In this document: in pieces, positions 12,097 through 18,000 of the stretch
How the letters are laid out: the number at the start of each line of letters is the position of its first letter
How positions within the stretch are numbered: the stretch's first letter is position 1
Origin: Styela clava
Lineage: Eukaryota
NCBI RefSeq assembly: GCF_964204865.1
Contig: NC_135259.1
Span: 8,060,001 to 8,124,000 of the forward strand
Length of the DNA stretch: 64,000 bases
Reading direction: 5' to 3'
The notes under the pieces: generated by a model
What the model was told of the DNA's origin: nothing
The model's database searches: none
The model's input: the letters and a program-made list of their open reading frames with translations, nothing else
Position numbers and translations under genes: made by a program

Positions 12097-15000
12097 ATGG
12101 ATGCATGGAAATTATTGAAGGTGGGGTCTCCCTAAAACCAGGCACTCGCGAATTCAGGCACTTTTTCAGGCACCATTTCAGGCACTTTGATATTTTTTTA
12201 TTTTTACTGTACGTCATTGGGATTTCCAATTTACCTGACAAGATAATTAGACTTTAAATAATTTTTTGCATCCCTATATTGCAATAAAACAATATTATAT
12301 CCAATTTATTAGGGTATAAATAATTTTTCAATAGTAAAATGTGGCAACATTGATTACAAAATATAGAAATCAGGCACTTGTGAAATTTCAGGCACTTGGT
12401 CAAAACCTCTTTTACAATGTATCTGATTACTCTAAAGCAGAAAACTAAATATATACACTTTGTATGGTTGAATTTACAACTTTTTGGTAAAATACAATAC
12501 CGTTTGTGACTGATGGAGGCGTGTCATATTTCGCAAGTGCCTGATTTTACATTTTTCTCGGTGATAGTTGCCATATTTTTTCACAATTATTTTCTTAAAT
12601 TATTTGCTTCAGCACTTACTATTCTTTGCTTTCTAACGCAAATTCATTGTTCCACAACAATTTGAGCGTTTTTAATATTGCAATGAGTAATACCATTTGA
12701 CAACATATGGTCAACCATTGTACTTTCTGGATTTATTTGAAATTGAATATGAATAATAAAATCTGGCAACCTCAGGCACAAAATACTAAAACCAGGCACT
12801 TGTGAAATTTCAGGCACTTCGTAAAAACCTATTTCTCGATGTTTTTACTTACTTTGAAGCAGAAAACTAAAATATACACTCTTTTGTATGATTGAAATGA
12901 CGTCTTTTTGGTAAAAAACAAGAACGATTGGGACTGGTCATGAGGGGTCAAATTTCGCAAGTGCCTGATTTTTCATTTTTTTCGATAACAGTTGCCATAT
13001 ATTTTCGCAACAATTTTTCTAGATTATTTGCTTCAGCACTTACTATACTTTGCTTTCTAACGCAAATTCATTGTTCCACAACAATTTGAGCGTTTTTAAT
13101 ATTGCAATGAGCAATACCATTTGACAACATATGGTCAACCATCGTACTTTCTGGATTTATTTGAAATTGAATATGAATAATAAAATCTGGCAACCTCAAG
13201 CACAAAATACTAAAACCAGGCACTTGTGAAATTTCAGGCACTTCGTAAAAACCTATTTCTCGGTGTTTTTATACACTTTGAAGCAGAAAACTAAAATATA
13301 CTCTCTTTTTTATGATTGAAATGACGTCTTTTTGGTAAAAAACAAAAACGATTGGGACTGGTGATGAGGGGTCAAATTTTGCAAGTGCCTGATTTTTCAT
13401 TTTTTTCGATAACAGTTGCCATATATTTTCGCAACAATTTTTCTAAATTATTTGAGTTAGAACTTACTAATCATTGCTTTTTGAAAGGAATTCCTAGTTC
13501 TAAAACAATTTCAGCGTTTTTACAATGAGCAATATTATTTGACAACATATACATAAACATCGTACTTTTTGGATTTATTTGAAATTGAATAGGAATGATA
13601 AAATCTGGCAACAGCAAGCACAAAATACTAAAACCAGGCACTTGTGAAATTTCAGGCACTTTGTAAAAACCTATTTCTCGATGTTTATACTTACTTTGAA
13701 GCAGAAAACTAAAATATACACTCTTTTGTATGATTGAAATGACGTCTTTTTTGGTAAAAAAGAAAAACGATTGGGACTTGTGATGAGGGGTCAAATTTCG
13801 CAAGTGCCTGATTTTTCATTTTTTTTCGATTACAGTTGCCATATATTTTGCAATATATTTCATAAAATCATTTTCGTCAGAACTTAGTACTTACTATACT
13901 TTGCTTTCTCGGTAAAATGTTTTTTAAGACAATCCGATGTATATTGAGTGCTATTCTTATCGCTAATTTCAATTCGACGTCTGCCCGAAGGTGGTGCAAG
14001 TATTTATATTTGAAGTGAGTACATACCTCATCAAAACGCTCAGATGGAAGATTGAACAAGTCGGAGTCAACAAAAATTCAATCACATTTGGAACGTTGTC
14101 GCACTGCATCGTCGCCACTCATATACTCTGACATTCCGATGCATGAATTTTGCTTTCTGGAAAATAATAATTGGAGTGTCTGTTAAAGTGCGGAATGTAT
14201 ACGGGAGCACGTACAATATCAATGCTTCGTTTGCAAGCGTTGGTATCATGATACATGTGAGAAATTATCGAAAGCGAAATTGTGGAAGTGTAAAATTTGT
14301 ATTCGGTAAGTCGATGTTGCAAATGTGGGTATTTTCAGGGCGCTCCCGTAGTAGCCTATGTGCTCCAAGATGGCGCACAACCTATTACCTCTATCTCGGT
14401 ACACATACTATGTTCGGGTTGTGTGCCAACTTTGTGCACATACTACGGGAGCACCATTTTCTGCACAACCTATTCTGATGCTCATTCGCGACATGAAGAA
14501 ACTATACGCCCGACATATAAGAGTAGCAAACAATACACAAAACCTTTTCATGTTTAATTTCAGAACTGACATTTAAAATTTTCAATTCTTAGATCTGTGG
14601 TTTTACCTAATTGCAAGATACGTAAATCATATCATGTCAAAATAGAACAAATAGTAAGGATTTTCATTGGATACTCAATATTTCTAATAATTTTCAAACT
14701 GAAAGCTTCGATTAGTGTTCACTCATACACTTCCTTTGTGAAGTTGTGTTTTTAATGTTTTATCTCCTTAATAAATTCAAATTTATATCCCCAATTACTG
14801 ATGAAGAAAGATCTTTAATCGAGAGTTTAATACGGCTTCTGTGACATTAAAAACAATTACTGTTTTACGTTTTTATATATTTGTAACTTTTTGAATAACG
14901 CAAAAAAAAATCGTTGACTGACTACTGGCGTGTTGAATATTGAAGGATTTTTATTGTAACATTCGTTTAACGATGCTTTTAAGCCTAACTTTGGGCATAT

Positions 15001-18000
15001 CAGCTACCTGATGTCATTCGCCGAGCGAATTTTGTTTAGGTGACATTGCCATCTCGTATTTACCATCTTGTAGCCATTCTTCTTATTTAGGAACTACGTG
15101 TTTTACAGTTAGCTGTTACAGCATGAAATAATGTACAAATAATTCTACGTAAACTATCCATGAAATCCATTCCATAAACTATCCATGAAAAGATATTACA
15201 GTCAGATCTTCAGGTTGTAAAGAATATCATACAACAGCAACGTCAAGTGATTGAATATCTTTATTGTAGCCGTGGTTGAACACCGCTGGTTGTCAATATA
15301 GATTTTGCACAGGCTTTTATACATTTTGTGAACGGTAAATTATGTTCTATTATGGGATAATGTGACTTGGATACGTATTATAAAAAATTCTATACGACAT
15401 AAGTCAATTGTTTCTGTTATGTAGTTTATATGAAGTCATAGGCCGAATTACATTAATAAAATCGTCGTCCGATAACAATTAAAACTGGAATTTCGAACTA
15501 ATATTGCCAGAAGACAAATTAGGTTCTTTATAACAATGCGATTGTTGCTACCTGGGTAATATATTACGTCGAAATGTTTATAACAAATTAGAAGAAGTTT
15601 TGAACCAATTTCAAGGGTTCCGAACATTACTATAAAGATGTCGTCTGAATAACTAATATTCTTTACAGATCTGTCAAATTTAAACCCGTATTTAAATAAT
15701 ACATATGTAATACTTTTGAATTAATAAAAATAAACAACACAATGTCATTCAAACTTTACAATATTCAAATAGTGATTGGTTTAATTAAATACCAATTTCC
15801 GGAGTAGATACTGATGTTAAAAGTTTAATTCCATTTATGCTAAGTGGAGCTCTCATACAAACATTGACTTTTATAAAATAATGCAATAGGGAAACAACAT
15901 ATAAAAAAAAGACAAAAATTATAGAGATATGGCAACTACCATTGACAAAACCAAAGAATCAGGCACTTGCTAAATTTGCCACATTCCTACCAGTGACAGT
16001 TCTTCTTGTTTTGAACAATAAAAATACCAAATTCAGTCATACAAAATATGTATATTTGGATTTTCGGCTTTAAAGTAATCAAAAACATCGGGAAATGGTT
16101 TTTTACAAAGTGCCTGAAATTTCACAAGTGCCTGATTTTAGTATTTTGTGCTTGCGGTTGCCAGATTTTATCATTCCTATTCAATTTCAAATAAATCCAA
16201 AAAGTACGATGGTTATCTATATGTTGTCAAATGATATTGCTCATTGCATTATTAAAAACGCTGAAATTGTTGTAGAACTAGGAATTTCCTTTAAAAAGCA
16301 ATGATTAGTAAGTTCTGACGAAAAAGATTTTATGAAAAGTATTGCAAAAATATATGGCAACTGTAATCGAAAAAAATGAAAAATCAGGCACTTGCGAAAT
16401 TAGACCCCTCATGACCAGTCCCAATCGTTCTTGTTTTTTACCAAAAAGACGTCATTTCAATCATACAAAAGAGTGTATATTTTAGTTTTCTGCTTCAAAG
16501 TAAGTAAAAACATCGAGAAATAGGTTTTTACGAAGTGCCTGAAATTTCACAAGTGCCTGGTTTTAGTATTTTGTGCTTGAGGTTGCCAGATTTTATTATT
16601 CATATTCAATTTCAAATAAATCCAGAAAGTACGATGGTTGACCATATGTTGTCAAATGGTATTGCTCATTGCAATATTAAAAACGCTCAAATTGTTGTGG
16701 AACAATGAATTTGCGTTAGAAAGCAAAGTATAGTAAGTGCTGAAGCAAATAATCTAGAAAAATTGTTGCGAAAATATATGGCAACTGTTATCGAAAAAAA
16801 TGAAAAATCAGGCACTTGCGAAATTTGACCCCTCATCACCAGTCCCAATCGTTCTTGTTTTTTACCAAAAAGACGTCATTTCAATCATACAAAAGAGTGT
16901 ATATTTTAGTTTTCTGCTTCAAAGTAAGTAAAAACATCGAGAAATAGGTTTTTACGAAGTGCCTGAAATTTCACAAGTGCCTGGTTTTAGTATTTTGAGC
17001 TTGAGGTTGCCAGATTTTATTATTCATATTCAATTTCAAATAAATCCAGAAAGTACGATGGTTGACCATATGTTGTCAAATAGTATTGCTCATTACAATA
17101 TTAAAAACGCTCAAATTGTTGTGGAACAATGAATTTGCGTTAGAAAGCAAAGAATAGTAAGTGCTGACGCAAATAATTCAAAAAAATAATTGCGAAAAAA
17201 TATGGCAACTGTCACCGAGAAAAATGAAAAATCAGGCACTTGCGAAATATGACACGTCTCCATCAGTCACAAACGGTATTGTATTTTACCAAAATGTTGT
17301 AAATTCAACCATACAAAGTGTATATATTTAATATTCTGTTTTAGAGTAATCAGATACATTGTAAAATAGGTTTTGACCAAGTGCCTGAAATTTCACAAGT
17401 GCCTGATTTCTATATTTTGTAATCAATGTTGCCACATTTTACTATTGAAAAATAATTTATACCCTAATAAATTGGAAATAATATTGTTTTATTGCAATAT
17501 AGGGATGCAAAAAATTATTTAAAGTCTAATTATCTTGTCAGGTAAATTGGAAATCCCAATGACGTACGGTAAAAATAAAAAATATCAAAGTGCCTGAAAT
17601 GGTGCCTGAAAAAGTGCCTGAATTCGCAAGTGCCTGGTTTTAGGGAGACCCTTGAAGGTGAGAAAATAATAAAATTCGTTTTCTGCAATGTTACCGTACC
17701 AGTATTAAATTATACCAGTATAACCACTGGTATAGATCTACTACCGGTAAATTTTTAATTTACTACCGTTACTTTGGTGCAAAAATTCCATGGATAATTT
17801 CGAGACATGGAGCAAAACCTTTCAACTAGCAGTCTAGTTTAAAACATGAAAAATAGGATGTGCCCGCTTGCCGTACTTTTTGTTATTTCTGTATTTCATA
17901 AGTTTTATTTTTCAGTAGTGTCCTGATGTGGCATTTTATATGCCCAATTTTATTACTGACAAAGAAGAAGAGTATCTTGTGAATGAAGTTTATAAATCCC

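Follow-up and report, generated by a model that had tools for sequence, protein, structure and literature searches.

In a 64,000-nucleotide stretch of the Styela clava genome (RefSeq assembly GCF_964204865.1, contig NC_135259.1, positions 8,060,001 to 8,124,000 of the forward strand; hereafter the window, with positions counted from its first letter), the first splice donor of the ALKBH6 gene is interrupted by a transposon. The element is a non-autonomous foldback DNA transposon of 5,528 bp (12124-17651), which lies between intron positions +3 and +4 of this donor. It is flanked by a perfect 9-bp target site duplication (TSD), TTGAAGGTG, whose copies at 12115-12123 and 17652-17660 directly adjoin the inverted termini. 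The first-pass annotation of this DNA had described such a transposon, with the TSD straddling the exon-intron junction, and the inverted arms, their tandem arrays and the TSD rule of the family bear this description out. The upstream TSD copy leaves exon 1 with a nearly equivalent donor, and splicing of the allele that carries the element (the filled allele) is probably unaffected.

Insertion site and anatomy of the element

On the plus strand, the left junction reads GGAGA ATG GAT GCA TGG AAA TTA TTG AAG / GTG GGGTCTCCCTAAAACC, where the slash marks the exon-intron boundary, and the right junction reads ...GGTTTTAGGGAGACCC, then TTGAAGGTG, then AGAAAAT. The coding sequence of exon 1, ATGGATGCATGGAAATTATTGAAG, begins with the ATG at 12097 and ends at 12120. 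The element itself starts with GGGTCTCCC... at 12124 and ends with ...GGGAGACCC at 17651. In the present donor, AAG/GTGGGG, positions +1 to +3 are therefore supplied by the TSD and positions +4 to +6 by the terminal GGG of the element, and the original donor, AAG/GTGAGA, now lies beyond the right inverted repeat (17655-17663), exactly as had first been read in the sequence. The features of the insertion are as follows.

12115 to 12123, no strand: left TSD copy TTGAAGGTG, which holds the donor AAG/GTG (sequence, family TSD rule)
12121 to 12126, plus strand: present intron 1 donor, GTGGGG (sequence; U1 duplex -9.3 kcal/mol, original -9.6)
12124 to 17651, no strand: non-autonomous foldback DNA transposon, 5,528 bp (termini, paired copies, DNA contig of run X1)
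12124 to 13900, no strand: left inverted arm, including a 424-bp tandem array at 12330-13853 of 3.6 units (self-comparison)
13901 to 15899, no strand: unique centre without a long open reading frame (ORF), 90-99% conserved in at least 24 copies (genome copies)
14187 to 14306, plus strand: PHD-finger-like relic (...CKIC) closing a broken frame (sub-threshold Pfam PHD match, E = 0.03)
15900 to 17651, no strand: right inverted arm, including a 424-bp tandem array at 16032-17446 of 3.3 units (self-comparison)
17652 to 17660, no strand: right TSD copy TTGAAGGTG (sequence, family TSD rule)
17658 to 17663, plus strand: displaced core of the original donor, GTGAGA, after the TTGAAG of the TSD (sequence)

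The inverted arms are about 1.75 kb long, and each contains 3.3-3.6 tandem units of 424 bp. They had been called near-identical, which overstates their likeness: their identity is 94.2% over about 1.7 kb (15 gaps), and the best ungapped stretch covers 1,260 nt at 97%. The longest ORF of the unique centre (about 2 kb) does not exceed 111 aa. The 7-mer CAGGCAC/GTGCCTG occurs 33 times in the element and only twice in all of the window outside it (58 kb), with four copies of the motif within 70 nt of each element tip, and these copies look like transposase-binding sites.

The terminal 22-mer GGGTCTCCCTAAAACCAGGCAC was found at 85 places in the genome when up to two mismatches were accepted, against 0 for a reversed control, and shared termini define about 30 paired elements with lengths of 0.5-14.5 kb. 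An exact 9-bp TSD flanks 10 of the 11 other paired copies for which both flanks were available, and the remaining copy has one of 8 bp; no target consensus is evident among the 11. Because these TSDs adjoin the same termini as those of the ALKBH6 element, the TSD at ALKBH6 is not a chance repeat.

Multi-copy elements with long internal repeats can mislead assemblers, and a repeat copy might thus have been misplaced at the ALKBH6 site. Such an artefact is scarcely credible here, since the perfect 9-bp TSD stands at the exact family termini, as the family rule demands, and a contig of short DNA reads from run X1 spans the left junction (12001-12151) with zero differences from the assembly. The assembly also contains neither an empty site nor a second copy of the flanks: the 20-mer ATTATTGAAGGTGAGAAAAT, searched with at most one mismatch, gave only two unrelated 1-mismatch matches, no haplotig was found, and both flanks are single-copy.

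The ALKBH6 gene and its first exon

The gene consists of five coding exons on the plus strand, and the insertion has enlarged its first intron from 261 nt to 5,798 nt (12121-17918).

11902 to 12096, plus strand: 5' untranslated region (UTR) of ALKBH6, minimum extent (RNA contigs of runs X5 and X12)
12097 to 12120, plus strand: coding part of exon 1, MDAWKLLK (RNA joint to 17919; RefSeq XP_077972963.1; relative P0002)
17661 to 17918, plus strand: rest of the original intron 1 (sequence, RNA joint, single-copy)
17913 to 17918, plus strand: tandem acceptor CAG/TAG, of which TAG is used (RNA joint 12120/17919)
17919 to 18048, plus strand: exon 2 (matches 7vjs residues 20-62, E = 1.2e-14)
18731 to 18777, plus strand: exon 3 (matches P0001)
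19087 to 19191, plus strand: exon 4 (matches 7vjs residues 78-112, E = 1.9e-7)
19670 to 20056, plus strand: exon 5 and stop codon, with HxD, second His and RxxxxxR of the 2-oxoglutarate (2OG) oxygenase fold (matches 7vjs residues 113-238, E = 4e-21)

The identity of the gene was settled by PDB sequences and a word search, for which the exons were searched singly; the full-length protein is the database record P0001. Human ALKBH6 (7vjs) is the sole significant PDB sequence for each of exons 2, 4 and 5. In Pfam, exons 2 and 4 had no match and exon 5 matched 2OG-FeII_Oxy_2 below the threshold. The 2OG/iron ligands are intact in exon 5 when compared with 7vjs (PHQDG vs PHEDG, MHGIS vs LHGIA, and the Arg motif vs RVSLTIRRVP). 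A word search with exon 5 retrieved XP_077972963.1 (P0001), annotated as 'putative RNA/DNA demethylase ALKBH6 isoform X1 [Styela clava]', a protein of 230 aa that is encoded on the contig of the window, starts with MDAWKLLK and is identical to the exon model 12097-12120, 17919-18048, 18731-18777, 19087-19191 and 19670-20056. The exon lengths (24+130+47+105+387 = 693 nt) have consistent phases and give 230 codons, the length of P0001. As originally stated, the exons after the insertion are intact, exons 2-5 being open and matching ALKBH6.

RNA data came from runs X5 (study P2), X9 and X12 (study P4). Contigs of X5 and X12, two independent studies, join 12120/17919 with GT..AG; they are continuous with 12001-12118 and extend 74 and 99 nt further upstream, which puts the transcription start near 11900-11930. 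This exon 1-exon 2 joint is the junction seen in RNA, the other ALKBH6 junctions being set by the sequence and the RefSeq match. A relative, P0002, which is 74% identical, begins with MEPWKISKCP, which shows conservation of this short coding exon. The RNA joints, the RefSeq protein start and the N-terminus of the relative thus agree that exon 1 and its donor are real. The first-pass annotation would not have held if ALKBH6 transcripts never included 12097-12120, or if orthologs lacked an MDAWKLLK-like first exon; the RNA contigs include exon 1, and P0002 has a similar start.

The region from 11831 to 12123 occurs only once in the genome. A highly abundant repeat, with at least 571 genome candidates at first look, ends immediately before the ALKBH6 promoter (11761-11830), and the unique promoter and 5' UTR of the gene measure only about 290 nt. 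Just downstream of ALKBH6, at 22897-24819, are remains of a hAT-like transposase, a 440-aa frame with DUF4371 (E = 2.9e-25) that is frameshifted into two other frames. A run of 128 N, either a gap or masked sequence, is found at about 25100-25230.

Transcripts at the displaced donor

Duplication of the donor raises the possibility that the displaced copy (17657/17658), or the end of the element, feeds an alternative transcript, for instance one with an element-initiated or element-containing first exon. Such a transcript might explain RefSeq isoform X2, a protein of 215 aa that is listed in both RefSeq releases and starts with MPNFITDK at Met16 of exon 2. In addition, the element ends are well covered by RNA contigs, with a depth of 145-158 in X12 at 17401-17800. 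However, the three RNA runs contained neither a 17657-17919 joint preceded by element sequence nor a first exon driven by the element. The exonised element end and the transposon-driven first exon that the first-pass annotation had suggested were thus not encountered; of the two joints it had set up for comparison, only that from 12120 was seen. Where RNA contigs pass out of the right end (17651/17652), the flanks they enter are different ones, so these contigs come from other copies of the family. Isoform X2 is, moreover, also found in the older release, whose protein differs by 3 residues, which points to another haplotype. It could derive either from the upstream CAG of the tandem acceptor, which would place an in-frame TAG after the 8-codon exon 1, or from an alternative 5' exon, and the upstream CAG explains it equally well. 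Altogether, an alternative transcript of this kind is improbable.

Competence of the rebuilt donor

By simple computed measures, the donor is very little weakened, contrary to what had first been supposed. The duplex with the U1 5' end has an energy of -9.3 kcal/mol for AAG/GTGGGG and -9.6 kcal/mol for AAG/GTGAGA, a slight loss due to the G·U pair that takes the place of A-U at +4, and the two donors match the consensus at 7/9 and 8/9 positions, respectively.

We propose that a young non-autonomous foldback transposon inserted by cut-and-paste at the 5' end of ALKBH6, about 200 nt downstream of the transcription start. A staggered 9-bp cut across TTGAAG/GTG, followed by gap repair, would have left the whole of exon 1 and GTG upstream of the element, whose first bases, GGG, would then take positions +4 to +6 in a donor able to pair with U1 almost like the original. 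The filled allele would be spliced from 12120 to 17919, and the element would be carried passively in the enlarged intron. That this allele yields the mRNA is what we infer, and its splicing is probably undisturbed. About evenly balanced is the broader proposal that the filled allele is fully functional, with the TSD and GGG rebuilding a competent 5' splice site and the foldback stem bringing the donor beside the old intron. The event would then be a chordate example, observed while still recent, of a one-step 22-fold intron expansion at a splice site with an unchanged mRNA, and a near relative of introner insertion, caused by a Mutator/Rehavkus-like family not yet described in tunicates.

Several observations weigh against the main proposal, that of undisturbed splicing. 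A G at +4 is a less favoured donor base, and the 1.7-kb arms can form a long RNA hairpin, the base of which would include +4 to +6, once the right arm is transcribed. On its sense strand, the element carries 19 poly(A)-signal-like hexamers (13 AATAAA and 6 ATTAAA), and the growth of the intron from 261 to 5,798 nt may be a further risk to splicing. Because the TSD duplicates AAG/GTG, filled and empty alleles give one and the same spliced junction. The RNA contigs may stem from empty alleles, since both have 5'-UTR indels, 60-90 nt from the insertion site, that are absent from the assembly: GGTACC is inserted behind 12050 in the X5 contig, and two 2-nt deletions are present at 12031/12034 in the X12 contig. 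No RNA contig with the assembly haplotype was seen in X5, X9 and X12. Finally, the class of the element is read from its structure, as no MULE-type DDE transposase was found, either in the element itself or in any partner sharing its termini.

Some of these observations would also fit a filled allele that is hypomorphic or null, in which the change at +4 to +6, the 5.5-kb hairpin-forming insert or the poly(A)-like signals impair exon 1-2 splicing. Such an allele would persist only as a recent, recessive or mildly deleterious polymorphism, and the RNA junction would come from empty alleles, as the 5'-UTR indels of both contigs and the missing reference haplotype would lead one to expect. The insertion also appears to be young (see later in the text), so that the intact downstream exons are uninformative on function. 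Nevertheless, we consider an impaired allele, although it is the main rival reading, less likely than normal splicing. The complementarity to U1 is almost unchanged, and U1 could already occupy the donor while transcription has yet to reach the right arm, 5.5 kb downstream. Moreover, introns of such size that hold transposons are common in the S. clava genome (PMC7540406), and both the assembly and DNA run X1 contain the insertion.

Three haplotypes can be distinguished over a 20-nt stretch of the 5' UTR (12031-12050), one shared by the assembly and DNA run X1, one in X5 and one in X12; they are usable as tags for allele-specific expression.

Age of the insertion

The left arm of the element is 98.8% identical to the left arm of the copy on contig C14, vs 94% to its own right arm. 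This comparison shows that the differences between the arms were inherited, and arm-to-arm identity, judged in this way, is not an age clock. In the centre, 15 substitutions in 2,001 nt (99.2% identity) separate the ALKBH6 copy from each of two other copies, and the heterozygosity reported for S. clava is 1.72% (PMC7540406). As the divergence of the centre is below this value, the insertion appears to be younger than the typical coalescence of alleles; it is probably not fixed and still polymorphic. The initial view of a recent, possibly polymorphic insertion is thus plausible from the identity of the sister copies, whereas the identity of the arms, from which it had been drawn, does not provide a basis for it.

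Content of the family and its relatives in the genome

The 2-kb centre is present in at least 24 copies of the family with 90-99% identity. Neither an ORF of at least 160 aa nor a transposase was found in the ALKBH6 copy or in the copies of 8-14.5 kb. The latter were considered as candidates for an autonomous partner and rejected, their extra DNA being only nested repeats, including a long terminal repeat (LTR) retroelement. A 169-aa open frame in one family copy was likewise rejected as coding, because it is a frameshift fusion. A genome search with two peptide relics of the centre returned family copies and two decayed relatives only. In the PHD-like relic at 14187-14306, whose arrangement is Cys4-His-Cys3-like, a stop codon interrupts the first pair of Cys residues, and the Pfam PHD match (E = 0.03) falls short of the cut-off. 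The relic may be the last trace of an ancestral transposase or of a captured gene. It is kept in all of the approximately 27 family copies.

The enlarged copies (8-14.5 kb) are located at G000:C13:9650639-9665140, for which the 9-bp TSD was checked, G000:C2:15084544-15098852 and G000:C8:24111323-24119472. One of them holds satellite-like, coding-looking repeats, and the LTR retroelement nested in another has integrase-like and envelope-like frames. A lone family terminus, with a decayed centre behind it, lies at C18:19161777 in a further locus (L059, G000:C18:19161500-19168500). Some 4 kb beyond this terminus, protease motifs of the Ulp1-like (H..D..C) and USP-like (NxCWFNSxLQ) kinds occur in open frames of the minus strand.

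RNA contigs of X5 and X9 contain a spliced minus-strand transcript within the element centre (13962-15749), with a joint at 14156/15008 that reads CT..AC on the plus strand and GT..AG on the minus strand. The contig differs by about 3% from the ALKBH6 copy, which indicates that it comes from another copy, and it has no long ORF.

Classification and comparison with known systems

Rehavkus elements, which are related to Mutator, typically combine a PHD finger with TSDs of 9 bp and with long inverted repeats that contain subterminal tandem repeats (PMC6446971; bioRxiv 10.1101/2024.12.02.626372). Reports of them to date concern arthropods and annelids (PMC6446971), not tunicates. The ALKBH6 element shows the 9-bp TSD and the long inverted repeats with subterminal tandem repeats expected of a foldback element of this type, and it is Mutator/Rehavkus-like by structure alone; membership of the superfamily is unproven because the defining transposase was sought and not found. 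It differs in this respect from Rehavkus/MULE elements (Repbase Rehavkus; Tribolium Rehavkus), as without a transposase there is no sequence-level link to their DDE domains.

A MULE domain search of the genome gave at least 82 transposase matches, and the long ones are PHD-OTU-MULE foldback elements with other termini; autonomous-looking foldback MULEs are present in S. clava. One of them (L055, G000:C10:8542300-8552200, element at about 1028-7077) has an open frame of 992 aa, which combines OTU protease and MULE domains with a PHD-like cluster of Cys residues at the N-terminus, and the arms of this element, about 1 kb long, are built of approximately 170-bp repeats; similar ORFs of 975 and 940 aa occur at L056 and L057. 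The termini of these autonomous elements (GGTTCC...) are unlike those of the ALKBH6 family. For MULEs, insertion near the 5' ends of genes is typical.

The long inverted arms of tandem repeats around a short or variable centre also recall the Drosophila Foldback (FB) elements, which likewise produce a 9-bp TSD. The likeness is one of architecture, and the subrepeat unit of FB measures tens of bp, vs 424 bp here.

Introners are DNA transposons that make introns, with a splice site taken from the TSD (bioRxiv 10.1101/2022.06.06.494994). The ALKBH6 element resembles them in that the TSD supplies a splice site, rebuilding AAG/GTG upstream of the element. It differs in having landed in an existing intron of 261 nt, and no splice site of its own was seen in use; nothing points to a specialisation of the family for genes. 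Behind the right TSD come 258 nt of unique intron and then the acceptor in use, which means that the intron predates the insertion and that no new intron arose in a continuous exon.

In maize Ds, Mu and dSpm alleles and in Caenorhabditis elegans Tc1 alleles, transposons are removed from the pre-mRNA by splicing. These alleles and the ALKBH6 case have in common a DNA transposon in a transcribed region that is tolerated via splicing. However, the former use cryptic sites in or near the element and their mRNA is often altered, whereas at ALKBH6 the normal donor position and acceptor are usable and the mRNA would be unchanged. Both non-autonomous Mutator-like foldback elements and tolerated transposons in introns are known already, and the ALKBH6 case is one more of each.

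Significance of the insertion

This is a single insertion of an ordinary type, and it reveals no new kind of system. If the filled allele splices normally, it would constitute a natural experiment on how far a 5' splice site tolerates the replacement of +4 to +6 together with a 5.5-kb hairpin-forming insert behind it. It would also show that TSDs can shield genes from insertions at splice sites, by the same logic as in the making of introns by introners. If the filled allele is impaired, a natural ALKBH6 hypomorph would be segregating in an invasive ascidian. In S. clava, this young foldback family of about 30 copies may still be mobile.

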